In this document: piece by piece, positions 2,991 to 49,540 of the stretch
Layout of the letters: the number at the start of each line of letters is the position of its first letter
How positions within the stretch are numbered: position 1 is the first letter of the stretch
Assembly: GCA_965603825.1 (NCBI GenBank)
Contig: CBFDEM010000013.1
Coordinates: forward strand, 248,001 to 312,000
Direction: 5' to 3'
DNA: 64,000 nt
Origin: Blepharisma stoltei ATCC 30299
Taxonomy: Eukaryota; Protista; Ciliophora
Translations under genes and position numbers: made by a program
The notes under the pieces: model-generated
Told to the model about the DNA's origin: nothing
Databases searched by the model: none
Seen by the model: only the letters and a program-made list of their open reading frames with translations

Positions 2991-4907
<1,917 letters not shown>

Positions 4908-44277: not shown

Positions 44278-45432
44278 TTATTCATTTAAGAATGAAGCAA
44301 TGTCACTGTTACCAAATCCTTCAGGCTTAGGAGGCACTCCCTCTACTTCTATTAGCGCGAAATGGTCAATTTTTAAATTACAAACGTTGACCCCAACATT
44401 TGACAGCATTGTGTCAGTGAAGAAATGCTTCATCTCTTCCCAAGCCCTCTGGCACTCAGCGTCATGCTTGCTTTTCTTACAGCAGTAAATATTGGCTCTC
44501 TTGCAAATAGTTTCAGTGCTTGCCTCTGCGAAAAAGAGTTCAATAAACAGCAGATAAGCTTTTTGAACAGCAGGCTTAGAAAAGTATGACTTCACGTACG
44601 CATTATTCCAACTCTTATGCTCAGCCTCTGCATTTCTTTTGCATTTACCATCTGTATTTGGGCCTGATTCGGTTTTTGACTCTTCTTTCAAGACATCAAA
44701 GTAATCGAAAAAATGCTGCTTTATTTCTCCGATTATCCGGATAATTTCCTGGCTTTTAACGTCCAGATTTTTAATTACCTTGGCAAGAGGTCGATTGTTT
44801 TGAATTTGTCTAAGGACTTTTTTATGCGCTCGAATTAGCTGAGCTCTTATATACTCTTTTTTTGGGTGTTTGGTTTTATCTTTATTATAATATTTCATTA
44901 AGAAAATTGTATCATCATGGTATCGGGTTGAAAAATTTGCTCTGTCAACACTTAGTTTGATTCCAGAAACCGAGCCTTCAGTGACTTTTGAGTTCCTATT
45001 CCTGCTACTATTCATGCTTTGAGCACTGCTTAAACTGCTGCTGAGAATACTGCTATTGACACTTGTAGTAGATTCATATTGCTCCTCATCCATTAAATGT
45101 TCTTCTTCATATCTTCAAGGCTCATGAAAATTTACCCCATTGTAACATAAATTTTGGAAATTATTCTGGTCGGGGTGTTCATCTTTCAGCTCCCATGAAG
45201 GCTCTATTTTATCAAAATCATCAACTTTTTCCTCTTCTATAATAGGAGCCAGAGAATGATCACTAAAATTATTAAAAACTCTTGGATCTAAATAATCAGT
45301 GCTACCATCGGCAAATGGTTCTGTATGAATCGAAGAGATGGTGTCTATTTCTTCAGTTGGAACTAAAGATAAGTTGCCCATTTTGGAGGTAAGAGAAGAG
45401 GTCGAGCTTTGTGAAAAATTTTCTTGAGCCAT
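44278..45432 (-). CDS. Unknown-family protein, paralogue 1 of tandem array, 384 aa
   Basis: Two track ORFs joined by TGA 45115; acidic/Ser-rich N-terminus, then PKKEYIRAQLIRAHKK, KTESGPNTDGK, C...CCKKSKHDAEC...W. Confidence 0.88.
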
Positions 45433-46368
45433 ATTATGAATCTACAGATTAAGTTTAGTTAACTTATTGTATTCCGCATTTTTATTATTGCCATTACAAC
45501 TTCCTGCCAAGTAGTTTAGACCTCCCCATCTGGTTAAAATTGAGCCTACCACCTTTTAATTCTACCAGCTATCTCTTACACATTTCTGACGTGATTTTAA
45601 ATATTTAAATTAGGACATCTAGCCTTCATTGCTAATGTATAGTACATATGAAAAATTTATGCTGAAATCTTATTAGAGATCGAGAAGCTAAATATATTAT
45701 TATCATAGATAGAAGGTTTGGATTTGAATGAGGTAGGGCTTGATTTCTTGAATGGCAACTCATTCATTTTCTGATTGAGGATTGCTGCCTAATTTTTATT
45801 TAGCTTGAAACGCTTTCAAGTGTTTGTTTTCAATTTTTTCTTGCTTTTAATAAGAAATCTATTATTTTTGTCTTTGGAGTCCTTTTCCTTTGAAAATTGA
45901 CTTGATAAAGAACTATATTTTTGGAATATTCTAATTTTGAAAGGCTCACAAATATTTTTAATATATCTTTAAATGTTTAACAAGGCTTTAAATCCATAAT
46001 TTGTTCACGTGTTTGCAATCAATTTAAACAGCAAGTTAGACACAATCCTATAATAAAATAAGCTTTGATTTTATATCTGCTATGCTATGAGAAAACTCTC
46101 TCCAAATTAGCCTTGGTCATTATAAATATTCAAAGTTTTGCTTTAGCGTTTTAGGATAAAATTTAATGGATAAACTTACTCTCTGCAAATTCGATTATAT
46201 TATCCAGTAGAGAAATCATTTTATGCTTATACACCTTATTTTAATTTTATAGAATAGGATAAATTAATAGACATTAATTAATATGAAAATAAGAGGTGGC
46301 AAGTAATCAAGCTATATAGTCAATTTTTTAATTCTAATTCGAAGAAATTTTTATTAGTTAGCAGAGCC

Positions 46369-47391
46369 TTATCTGGTGTAGTCGTTAAGAATTTCCTCAT
46401 TTTCAGCCTTTGGCCGATTTCTCTCGCTTTCTTTTTTTATAAGATCTTCAATAATTGTATCTTCTTGTCAGTATTCTGGAGGAAATCAAGGTGTAACTTC
46501 TTTAAGGTCTCGAATCATATATTTATTCAAATAGTAATGCAAGCTCTGCCATTTCTTAACGCATAGCTCTGAATGCTTACCATCTGGAGCACAACAAAGC
46601 ATTTTAAATCTATTGCACAGCAAGCTAGGGTTTGCTTCAGCAAAAATAAGTTCTATGTACCAGAAATAAGATTCAAGAATTCCTTCTATTGAGAAGTAAA
46701 ATATACAAAATTTATTATTGCAGCTGTTGGCATCACTGCTAGAGACATTTGCTCTTTTTGCTCTGCCGTCAGTTTTTGGGCCATTTTCTGTTTTACAGCT
46801 TTCGCTGATTGTTGAAATGTTCCGTAGGCAGATCGCTCTTAAAACATTTCATATATCTAGACACATACCATTTCTAGAGACAAAAGCATGCAAGCCCTTT
46901 TTAGGAATTTGACCTTGGATAATTTCCCTATTAGCTCTTTTGTGACCTCTAAGAACACGCAACCTTACATACTCTTTTTTTGGCCTTTCTCCTTGCCTTT
47001 TTCTTTTGAACTGCCCTAGGACGAGGCTGTCTGGCCCAAGCCTTCTTCTTTTTTTTTCTGGAACCATAGCAGTAGGTGTTAGATCTACGGCCCCCAATAT
47101 TTGCCCTTCATACGCATTTTCTTCTTGGCTCTGGCTATTTGATACAGAACTCTTATTGCTATACTCAAAGTATGAGCTCGCTTCATCAACACAAATGCCC
47201 TCTAAGTCAATATTTTCGAAGTCTCTTGGGTCTCATTGAGGAGGAATTTGATAAGTCGCAATGTGGTGATGGACAAGGGACTCTTGAATAAAAAAAGTTT
47301 CAGAATCTAGATCAACAGAGTTCTGTTCAGGGAAATTTAGGCCTATTTGATTGGATTTATCTTCTTCATTGCTTTCGCTGTCGTAGCTCAT
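46369..47391 (-). CDS. Unknown-family protein, paralogue 2 of tandem array, 340 aa, 4 TGA=Trp
   Basis: Manual translation from ATG 47391 to TAA 46369: PKKEYVRLRVLRGHKR, KTENGPKTDGR, YFWYIELIFA, LCNRFKMLCCAPDGKHSELCVKKW. Confidence 0.9.
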
Positions 47392-47730
47392 ATTTTGTTA
47401 AGCGTAAAAATGTAGGATCCTTATATTCTACTTTCTGAGGAAAAATCTTCAAAAATAATAATAGGATTTGCAGTCAGAAGAGCAATGATTATGCAAGAAA
47501 AGCAAATATCGAATAAATTCCAAGTAAATATCTCTATTCAAGGCTATAAGAAAAAAAAATTCAGTCTTTTCCCTTTTTGTCATCTTAAATTCTATTATTT
47601 ACTATGAGGATTTCTATATTAGAAAATTCACTAGATGCCAAGAATCCGCGATACTCATATATTGCATTTATGCTATCCAAATGATAAAATTAAGCAAAAG
47701 ATACTGTTTATTGCAATTAAATTGGCTAAG
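47392..47730 (-). promoter_or_regulatory. Conserved 5' flank of paralogue 2 (homologous to 49209-49540)
   Basis: Collinear alignment by eye, e.g. aaaaatgtaggat.cttatattct.ctttctg.ggaaa, aatcttcaaaaataat, tttccctttttgtcatctt.aattcta. Confidence 0.7.
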
Positions 47731-48191
47731 CTTTTTATGTTTTATAAAAATTAGCAAAAACTTTGTATAAAATTGGTATTCATTTTTAAAGATTTCTACT
47801 TGACCAGATAATTCGTATTACGAGCCTAGCAAATAGTAGAGGCTATTAGCATGTGCAATTGATTTACAATTAATATCCGTTGAGTTATGAAGCGAACATT
47901 TTAACTTTAAAAATTAGTAAACAATAATATCGCAACAGCTTCACTATATGCGAAAAAGATAACTATATATTTTAATTTTCTTACTGGTAAACTTAGTAGA
48001 TTGACATATTAATTTAAGTCAACGATATAAGATCTTTTTGATAGATATTAAAATAAAAAATGCTAACAAAGCAAATATTGTCATTAGACTGTTAAGAAAG
48101 CGGCTTAGTAAAAGGAAGCAAAAAGCATTTAAAATAATCTTTTAATATTATAAGAACCAATTTAAGTAGAATTTCTATTATTTAGCAAAAC

Positions 48192-49208
48192 CTATAAAGT
48201 TGATTGCCTTAGAATATCTTCACTTTTTTGCTCATGCTGTAATCTCTCATTCTCAACTTGCTCCAGATATTCAAGTGTGTAATTTTTTTGATGGTATCCA
48301 TCAGGGAATCAAGCTTTCATCACAAGGCCTCTAGTTGTAAGATCTCTAATCATAATATCATTTAAATAAGCATGCAAATACTGCCATTTATTCGTACACT
48401 CATTTGAATGCGGGCCATAACAACAAAACATCTCAAATTTTCTGCAAAGCACGCTAGGGTTTTTGTTCGCAAAGATAAGTTCGATGTACCAGAAGTAAGA
48501 CTCAAGAACTCCTGGGATTGAGAAATAATTCCTGCAAAAATTATTGTTGAAGCTTTTCGCTTCATCACCCGAGATGATTTTCTTTCGGGATTTGCCATCA
48601 GTTGCAGGCCCGCTTTCTGTTTTGCAGCTTTGACTGATTGTTGATTTGTATCTCATGCAGGTTTCTGATAGAATTCTCCATATAAGTGGATACTGAGAAT
48701 TTTGGGTGGGTTCAAAAGCATGCAGAGCGTTGATAAGCGGAGTTTGATTTTTGAAAATTTGTCGATGCGCTTTTTTATGGCCTCTAATAACACGGAGTCT
48801 AATATACTCCTTTTTAGGGGTTTTTTCTGTCCTTGTGAAGAAATTTGATAGGATTAAACTGTCTAGCCCACGCTTTCTCCTTCTTTCAAGGGCTACAGTA
48901 GGTGTTAAGTCTATGTCCCCAAGCATCTGTCCTTCATACACATTTCCTTCTCGACTCTGACTATTTGCTGCTGAGCTCATCTCGCTGCACTCATAGTTTG
49001 TAATCTCTTCATCACCTTCAATGCCATCAATATCAATATTTTCCAAGTCTCTTGGCAATGGGTCAGTAATAATTGGGTGGAAAACAAATTGACTGTGATC
49101 AAGGACATTTTCGATAACTAAAGTTCCAGAGTCCAATCCTGTAGAGCTCTGGGAAGGGGAAAATAGATTTGGTTTGTCTCCGTCACTGCTCTTATCTCTG
49201 CTATTCAT
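48192..49208 (-). CDS. Unknown-family protein, paralogue 3 of tandem array, 338 aa
   Basis: PKKEYIRLRVIRGHKK, KTESGPATDGK, YFWYIELIFA, LCRKFEMFCCYGPHSNECTNKW. TGA 48309 read as Trp (WFP, as in paralogue 2) extends the frame to TAG 48192. Confidence 0.9.
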
Positions 49209-49540
49209 ATTTTGTTAAACCTAAAAATGTAGGATTCTTATATTCTGCTTTCTGCGGAAATAATCTTCAAAAATAATTAATCGAATTAGCAGTCATAAGA
49301 ACAAGGATTATGCCAAGAAATACAAATATCAAATAAATCTCTCTAAAAGTAGCTACAAGACAAATATTTTCAGCACATTTCCCTTTTTGTCATCTTGAAT
49401 TCTATATATTACCATCAAGATTTCTATATATGAAAATTCAGATAATGACAAGATTGAGTGATACTTAAATATTGAGTTTATGATTTCCAGATAATAAATC
49501 TAAGCAAGAGATGCTGCCTATAACAATTAAATAGGCCATG
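49209..49540 (-). promoter_or_regulatory. Conserved 5' flank of paralogue 3 (homologous to 47392-47730)
   Basis: Same alignment as for 47392-47730. Confidence 0.7.

Follow-up and report, generated by a model that had tools for sequence, protein, structure and literature searches.

What kind of protein is encoded by three neighboring, co-oriented genes that share a basic domain with conserved cysteines and histidine? The genes lie within a 64,000-nt stretch of the macronuclear genome of Blepharisma stoltei, referred to here as the window, and an earlier note made from the sequence alone had proposed them as candidate lineage-specific DNA-binding regulators. To our knowledge, very few transcription regulators are known from heterotrich ciliates, a group with two classic models, Stentor for single-cell regeneration and Blepharisma for mating and genome editing.

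Three intact genes share a basic domain of approximately 175 residues

Reading TGA as tryptophan on the minus strand revealed three intact, co-oriented open reading frames of 384, 340 and 338 aa, as first described, which we call P1, P2 and P3. P2 contains four in-frame TGA codons and P3 contains one. In the standard code, the longest piece of P2 is 82 aa, which agrees with the view that this gene is nearly invisible there. The coding sequences and their domains are as follows:

44281–45432, minus strand: P1 coding sequence, 384 aa, stop at 44278–44280; equals database protein P0055
44383–44916, minus strand: P1 basic domain, aa 173–350, by profile match
46372–47391, minus strand: P2 coding sequence, 340 aa, stop at 46369–46371; equals P0002
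46501–47031, minus strand: P2 basic domain, aa 121–297, by hmmsearch with the A2 profile
48195–49208, minus strand: P3 coding sequence, 338 aa, stop at 48192–48194; equals P0001
48333–48863, minus strand: P3 basic domain, aa 116–292, from alignments A1 and A2

Sequence similarity among the proteins is far above chance (E = 3e-85 for P3 with P2 and 5e-30 for P3 with P1), and the domain common to all three spans approximately 175 aa. In P3, it includes a basic helix (K132–R149), a loop (T197–K209) and a cluster of C262, C263, H267 and C271. Of the six ordered motifs listed in the earlier note, five occur in order in P1, P2 and P3; the sixth, a Cys/His motif, is found as written in P1 and P3 only, and the three- or four-residue spacing given for it fails in P2, which reads CC-x5-H. 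P1 is a divergent member of the family, and its N-terminal arm, 172 aa in length, is acidic and Ser-rich. The N-terminal arms of P1, P2 and P3 are indeed acidic, with net charges of −18, −15 and −12, respectively, and pI values of 4.3–4.5. The nuclear localization-like runs reported for P2 and P3 were located at residue 113 (KKRRR) and residue 109 (RRRKR), respectively, and a classical basic run of this kind is absent from P1.

Each gene is transcribed separately downstream of a long spacer

In four runs, P1, P2 and P3 each lie under their own transcript-like contig, with the spacers uncovered and no joints. Contigs over P1 span 44195/44259–45446, also without joints, those over P2 span 46338–47437, and those over P3 span 48161–49397. 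The P2 contigs carry a loose poly-T end at 46338, which indicates the poly(A) tail of a minus-strand mRNA; such a trace was seen for this one gene of the three. P1, P2 and P3 are separate, unspliced, intron-less mRNAs. The earlier note had counted a lack of transcripts against a regulatory role, and transcripts exist for all three genes.

The regions upstream of the genes contain the following features:

45433–46368, no strand assigned: P1 upstream spacer, 936 nt, with no open reading frame of 120 aa or longer; contigs stop at 45446 and resume at 46338
47392–47726, minus strand: P2 conserved upstream module (promoter plus leader), 77% identical to the P3 module
47727–48191, no strand assigned: distal, non-conserved part of the P2 spacer, without a contig at 47727–48160
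49209–49536, minus strand: P3 conserved upstream module, transcribed from 49209 to about 49397

The spacers upstream of P1, P2 and P3 measure 936, 800 and 676 nt and are free of open reading frames, which bears out the long spacers noted at the outset; the median is 226 nt for the 37 other genes in the window with a measurable upstream gap. Across the family described below, the median upstream spacer is at least 828 nt long, compared to 226 nt among other genes (p = 1.6e-7). Over approximately 335 nt upstream of P2 and P3, identity is 77%, and the synonymous sites of their coding sequences differ with a pS of 0.55. Insertions and deletions between the two modules are not multiples of three, which indicates that the module is non-coding. 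The transcribed leader of P3 is approximately 185 nt long and contains three upstream ATGs. When upstream regions were compared all-against-all, conservation was detected in three pairs only. A k-mer search of 28 family genes returned no common promoter motif that survives multiple testing and could suggest autoregulation, and an Rfam scan of the whole window identified no RNA genes in the spacers. Because their upstream regions are long and partly conserved, the family genes appear to be tightly controlled.

The domain defines a large heterotrich family under purifying selection

The array had been described as three paralogues, and while the paralogy is real, the family is not confined to three: the B. 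stoltei macronuclear genome encodes at least 41 copies, about half of them locally clustered. Stentor coeruleus encodes at least 14 copies, and public data contain 508 clusters at 50% identity (E ≤ 1e-3). Named matches came solely from B. stoltei and S. coeruleus, consistent with the proposed lineage restriction. A word-based protein search with the P1 domain returned the query alone and no longer fusion proteins. In the literature that we searched, the family is nowhere described.

Copies are 33–56% identical, with saturated synonymous sites, and the tree resolves old, species-specific clades that are conserved between Blepharisma species. The dN/dS ratio is 0.03–0.13 in unsaturated pairs and 0.36 for P2 and P3, all well below the value near 1 that had been named as evidence against a regulator family. 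The family is under purifying selection.

A conserved basic helix and a putative zinc site characterize the domain

All 236 members scored have a positively charged domain (median net charge +12), and 163 of them have tails whose net charge is negative. Among the B. stoltei copies, domain pI is 8.8–9.8; the P1 domain has a net charge of +10 (pI 9.3) and that of P2 a net charge of +15 (pI 9.6). The combination of basic domain, acidic tails and long upstream regions noted for P1–P3 therefore extends to the family as a whole. No signal peptide or membrane segment was found in the family, with a signal-like N-terminus in one of 236 members.

Residue conservation, measured in 237 members, is highest in the basic helix (helix 1), which has an entropy of 1.5 bits compared to 3.2 bits for helices 2–3, and its basic residues are almost invariant across hundreds of paralogues. 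An IQ-motif reading of this helix was dropped, as inspection showed a misfit at the key positions. As for the zinc knuckle that had been suggested, its CC-x3-5-H-x3-C core is conserved, but fewer than half of the members (48%) have its first cysteine, C255 in P3. Instead, the conserved arrangement is the core plus one of two alternative distal cysteines, C225 and C255, which replace one another (Fisher p = 3.9e-5, a value without correction for phylogeny). Of 237 members, 210 keep the whole CC-H-C core, and 15 have lost at least three of its four residues together. From this sequence pattern, the core and a distal cysteine probably form a structural zinc site.

The predicted fold is probably new

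Two independent AlphaFold models, of the P1 domain (m3577b615cfff; pLDDT 93.9, pTM 0.90) and of the P3 domain (me2432bcf5f14; pLDDT 89.5, pTM 0.86), show the same eight-helix fold. That no named domain could be recognized holds up, as searches of Pfam, NCBIfam, PDB sequences and PDB folds were all blank. Scans of P3, P1, 31 A2 members, ten long members and four more against Pfam-A and NCBIfam gave nothing near a cut-off, with a best score of 16.7 bits for DUF5677 (cut-off 27.1). PDB sequences searched by phmmer and hmmsearch gave no match (best E = 0.12), Foldseek on the PDB gave no usable relative (best E = 1.4), and VIA-align, in a wide search and a second look, reached a best Z of only 5.5. 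BFVD, searched by Foldseek, and the ESM Atlas, searched by shape and by features, returned no match. The models are confident and have no link to a characterized enzyme, and the Foldseek and VIA-align searches found no structural likeness to a known DNA-binding fold. With no relative in any sequence or structure search, the domain appears to be new, and its predicted fold is probably new as well.

P1–P3 as candidate nucleic-acid-binding regulators

Our best guess, which we hold tentatively and at somewhat less than even confidence, is that the P1–P3 family consists of nuclear nucleic-acid-binding regulators. Charge, conservation pattern and architecture are what point to DNA binding, nuclear location and zinc binding. 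In the mechanism that we propose, an all-helical basic domain of approximately 175 aa would define the family, and zinc would hold it together through CC-x3-5-H-x3-C and one of the two alternative distal cysteines. The nucleic acid bound by the domain would most likely be macronuclear DNA, with the near-invariant N-terminal basic helix (P3 K132, K133, R137, R142, K145 and R149) and the conserved loop T-E-x-G-P-x-T-D-G-K-x-K-R together as chief contact. The variable helices 2–3 and the acidic, hydrophobic-studded tails would then provide paralogue-specific partners or effector function, and the role proposed for the tails is that of transcription-factor activation regions. The family fits the transcription-factor class in architecture only, through its basic domain and separate effector regions. 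The near-invariance of helix 1 counts against a base-reading role, because base-reading positions of diversified factors are expected to vary, and the helix may instead contact a common partner or the phosphate backbone. It is possible, but in our view rather doubtful, that the domain represents a new DNA-binding fold specific to heterotrichs and that its 40 or more genes per genome are a major lineage-specific set of transcription factors.

A somewhat unlikely but substantial alternative is that the proteins have no nucleic-acid role and serve as protein-protein adaptors or as metal- or ion-responsive modules, for example as a helix-loop-helix bundle with a Cys/His metal loop that bears a distant likeness to the EF-hand-pair EC domain of SPARC; the acidic tails would then be linkers or binding motifs. 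The EC domain of SPARC/BM-40 (PDB 1sra and 1bmo) is the best structural match of both models and the sole recurrent one above noise (Z 5.2–5.5 over 115–117 residues, rmsd 4.0–4.3 Å), with the next unrelated row at Z 4.4 (P3 model) and 3.7 (P1 model). The helices come in the same order, a long N-terminal one packing against the helix-loop-helix pairs that follow, and the invariant charged residues and loop would suit a shared partner, protein or ligand, no less well than DNA. However, a Z of about 5 lies under the noise level that the tool states for helical models, identity to SPARC is 5–11%, and Pfam scans of the family gave no match to SPARC_Ca_bdg or EF-hand. SPARC is a secreted, disulfide-bonded protein that binds calcium via EF-hand loops, whereas the family lacks a signal peptide, is strongly basic and has loops that are Cys/His or basic rather than acidic. 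Moreover, a 175-aa domain with a net charge of +12, positive in every member, is unusual for a pure adaptor. Less probable is a post-transcriptional role, in which the proteins would bind RNA and affect the stability, localization or translation of mRNA in these very large cells. The domain is basic with a Cys3His-type cluster, its invariant basic helix suits backbone contact, and paper titles point to mRNA localization in giant heterotrichs; yet Pfam/NCBIfam and VIA-align gave no match to any RNA-binding family or fold, and tails that are both acidic and hydrophobic-rich are seen more typically in activators.

The unusually high number of invariant polar residues, including those of the conserved flexible loop, might suggest a small zinc-dependent enzyme with an active site built from invariant E, Y, R, K, T, D and N and the Cys/His residues. 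We consider this very unlikely, since Pfam/NCBIfam, Foldseek and VIA-align gave no match to an enzyme family or fold, His144 of the RGHK motif is kept in only 66% of members and is L, F or I in a third, and a housekeeping enzyme would not typically expand to 40 or more paralogues whose disordered tails vary. The suggestion that the genes are degenerate or domesticated mobile elements is unsupported and appears highly improbable. Although the copies are many, partly tandem or clustered, and set amid ORF-poor surroundings, the DNA of the 5.8-kb locus is single-copy, the locus has no flanking terminal repeats, and its short inverted repeats are at the level of chance in AT-rich DNA. Pfam/NCBIfam scans found no transposase, integrase or other such domain, and the divergence, saturation, low dN/dS and old clades described above argue against this reading.

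Nucleic-acid-binding regulation, our preferred reading, can be compared with known systems. Retroviral-type CCHC zinc knuckles (PF00098), which have the spacing C-x2-C-x4-H-x4-C, likewise bring three cysteines and one histidine close together beside basic residues. In contrast, the family has CC-x3-5-H-x3-C with the distal cysteine 8 or 37 residues upstream, set inside a 175-aa helical domain, and Pfam gave no match to PF00098. HMGB-type chromatin proteins are small and combine a basic helical nucleic-acid-binding part with an acidic tail, and the family proteins are also small, with a basic helical domain and an acidic tail; they have no match to the HMG-box by sequence or fold. Family size and long, regulated promoters are better matched to specific regulators than to abundant architectural proteins such as HMGB. 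The ApiAP2 proteins are transcription factors of alveolates, expanded in a lineage-specific manner, with a beta-sheet AP2 fold and demonstrated DNA binding. The family parallels them in concept, being clade-restricted, with dozens of paralogues and a single conserved basic domain amid sequence that is otherwise of low complexity; unlike that of ApiAP2, its domain is all-helical and has no AP2 match.

Because it has dozens of expressed members under purifying selection, is clade-restricted by named sequences, and combines an unmatched fold with regulator-like charge and tails, the family is a concrete, testable candidate for the missing heterotrich regulators. If this reading is true, the family would be a functional counterpart of ApiAP2 and would provide a handle on gene regulation in conjugation and single-cell regeneration. 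Even without DNA binding, it adds a well-defined new domain and a probable new fold to the catalog. We also considered SCSG1, a 198-aa "Stentor-specific" regeneration gene, as a family member, and no link could be made. A thin expression lead comes from the regeneration gene lists of an eLife 2022 study, in which one of 11 Stentor ids, SteCoe_1537, appears as one of the genes specific to sucrose shock in cluster 3.

The three genes and their transcripts

Three neighbouring minus-strand paralogues are intact when TGA is read as Trp:

P1: ORF 45432..44281, minus strand, 384 aa; transcript contigs 44195/44259-45446
P2: ORF 47391..46372, minus strand, 340 aa; transcript contigs 46338-47437, poly-T ends at 46338
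P3: ORF 49208..48195, minus strand, 338 aa; transcript contigs 48161-49397

An earlier note had called P2 nearly invisible in the standard code, which we confirmed: because of four in-frame TGA codons, its longest standard-code piece is 82 aa. P1, P2 and P3 each contain the six motifs described there, in one shared order; the sole departure is in the Cys/His spacing of P2, which has CC-x5-H. The NLS-like basic runs KKRRR and RRRKR were likewise found, as were N-terminal arms of acidic character (net charge -12 to -18 across P1-P3). The upstream spacers are as long as had been claimed, with ORF-free stretches of 936, 800 and 676 nt, where the remaining genes of the window have a median of 226 nt.

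Transcript data came from four runs of one 2022 study, which contain approximately 60% of the locus; the RNA label is itself a tool's guess, and we read the runs as RNA because their coverage is gene-shaped and carries a poly(A) trace. Contigs cover P1, P2 and P3 separately, leave 45496-46243 and 47740-48113 empty, and match the locus with zero joints and zero letter differences. Such coverage is what one expects of mRNAs that are polyadenylated, unspliced and monocistronic and that retain their TGA codons.

A conserved basic domain with a Cys/His cluster

Among 237 family members, 86-100% conservation was observed for K132, K133, E134, Y135, R137, I141, R142, K145, R149, G200, P201, N221, F229, F246, C262, C263, H267, C271 and W275 (P3 numbering), with weaker conservation of H144 (66%) and C255 (48%). 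Sequence entropy is lowest in the basic helix (1.5 bits), the best-conserved element, and highest in helices 2-3 (3.2 bits). In each of the 236 members scored for charge, the domain is net positive (median +12). Tails with a net negative charge occur in 163 of these members, and neither signal peptides nor membrane segments were found in this set. The CC-H-C core (C262, C263, H267, C271) is intact in 210 of the 237 members, and in 15 at least three of its four residues are lost jointly. Of the 33 members that lack C225, 28 have C255, versus 81 of the 177 that have C225 (Fisher p 3.9e-5, phylogeny ignored). From this pattern of retention and loss, we infer that the core may form a structural metal site for which C225 and C255 are alternative fourth ligands; the cluster is likely a structural zinc site.

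AlphaFold2 models of the family domain
P3 domain: 31 alignment rows, pLDDT 89.5, pTM 0.86
P1 domain: 77 alignment rows, pLDDT 93.9, pTM 0.90

The two independent models agree on eight helices and a single small bridge. Foldseek searches with the domain models returned no relative in PDB (best E 1.4) or BFVD, TM never rose above 0.41 in the Atlas shape search, and re-examination of Foldseek's own list by VIA-align gave a highest Z of 3.2. We conclude that the domain and its probable fold are previously undescribed.

Across 48,161 representative chains, VIA-align placed the SPARC/BM-40 EC domain at the top of the list for both models (Z 5.2-5.5, 115-117 residues aligned, rmsd 4.0-4.3 A), and the next unrelated row scored Z 4.4 (P3 model) or 3.7 (P1 model). 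The Z of the SPARC match lies below the noise level that the tool states for helical models, and we regard the resemblance as weak and topological rather than as kinship.

Family range and selection

The B. stoltei macronuclear genome is 41 Mb and has UGA=Trp, short intergenic regions and introns of 15-16 nt (bioRxiv 10.1101/2021.12.14.471607). Our own-genome searches used an assembly of 41.46 Mb in 64 contigs, of which the window is G000:C13:248001-312000. Proteins with in-frame TGA entered the searches either as segments free of stops or through their database protein ids. In this assembly the P3 protein matched 41 places, roughly half of them locally clustered: three copies on C39, pairs on C4, C38 and C45, and the P1-P3 trio. 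The DNA of the P1-P3 locus is single-copy. Among 1.84 billion representatives, a profile of 31 domains matched 508 clusters (50% identity) at E<=1e-3, of which 172 reach E<=1e-30; the matches listed are all 125-390 aa, and those with a species name all come from B. stoltei or Stentor coeruleus. Family members have database twins labelled Blepharisma stoltei, two transcripts in MMETSP differ hardly at all from two of the B. stoltei copies, and further members without a species name lie on gene-dense, ciliate-like contigs.

One such member, P0099, comes from a metagenomic contig of 51% GC (L033; region of interest 4380-4480). The CDC50 gene of that contig is interrupted by a GT..AG intron of 15 nt, a hallmark of heterotrichs. 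The family is therefore also carried by a GC-rich organism whose introns are tiny and heterotrich-like.

Tree building places P2 and P3 as sisters (support 99) and groups P1, on a long branch, with environmental forms that have long arms; Blepharisma and Stentor copies fall in mostly separate clades. An alignment identifies P0070 as a B. stoltei paralogue of P1 (41% identity). By the Nei-Gojobori method with TGA=Trp, dN/dS is 0.03-0.13 in family pairs with unsaturated synonymous sites, and family members are functional genes. P2 and P3 (dN 0.35, dS 0.98, ratio 0.36) are evolving fast, yet are still constrained.

Upstream regions

For 28 family genes, the median distance to the next upstream ORF is at least 828 nt versus 226 nt for the window's other genes (Mann-Whitney p 1.6e-7), where gaps run to the next ORF >=120 aa, a crude criterion applied equally to both sets, and many family values are lower bounds. 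Downstream gaps are longer too. P2 and P3 have in common an upstream module of approximately 335 nt with 77% identity (approximately 90% over the last 110 nt), whereas synonymous sites of these two genes differ at pS 0.55; its indel lengths are not multiples of three, and the alignment stops abruptly past -335. Either constraint on promoter and leader or gene conversion at the locus would account for the module.

The long spacers have an exception at G000:C39:518565-526676, where three family genes in tandem (L009, L010, L014) have unusually short upstream gaps of 180-251 nt. Two of its genes are very recent duplicates (dS 0.10, dN/dS 0.12).

Possible functions

Taken together, these results establish a real gene family that is expressed, under selection and restricted by name to one clade. 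Its proteins combine a basic core with acidic tails and lack targeting signals, and its control regions are long and partly conserved. Because of this layout and the likely zinc site, we tentatively predict, in line with the earlier note's proposal of DNA-binding regulators, that the proteins are nuclear nucleic-acid-binding regulators, a reading we hold at somewhat below even chances. Fold searches with the P3 and P1 models found no likeness to any DNA-binding fold, which speaks against this reading, and the near-invariant basic helix counts against it as well, since it suggests a common ligand rather than diversified base reading.

The domain could instead be an adaptor or a metal-responsive module, a role to which the putative metal site might belong and which we consider rather unlikely. 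That the proteins bind RNA is improbable in our judgement. An enzymatic role is very doubtful for a domain whose models matched no enzyme fold. The other explanation in the earlier note, a mobile-element relic, is the least probable for these intact, constrained genes.

Additional features of leaders and transcripts

The P1 leader is at most 14 nt. The apparent P3 leader (49209-49397, approximately 185 nt) is long by this genome's standard and contains three upstream ATGs (49393, 49378 and 49296), the first within the block ATGACAAAAAGGGAAA, of which P2 has a conserved counterpart in its own upstream region, at 47583; this arrangement may reflect translational control. Run X1 alone contains a low-depth 292-nt contig at 47413-47704, ahead of the main contigs for the P2 transcript, and transcription may have a second, more distal start there. 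In run X3, contigs break off inside P1 (at 44852) and inside P3 (at 49050) and run on into dissimilar sequence, which probably reflects chimeric assembly of paralogues or alleles rather than splicing. Elsewhere in the genome, the sister genes L024 and L027 (G000:C33:399480-403031 and C10:486192-489848) have in common a 230-nt far-upstream block of 73% identity, at -753..-527 and -889..-660, which could represent either a regulatory element acting from a distance or a small gene missing from the annotation.
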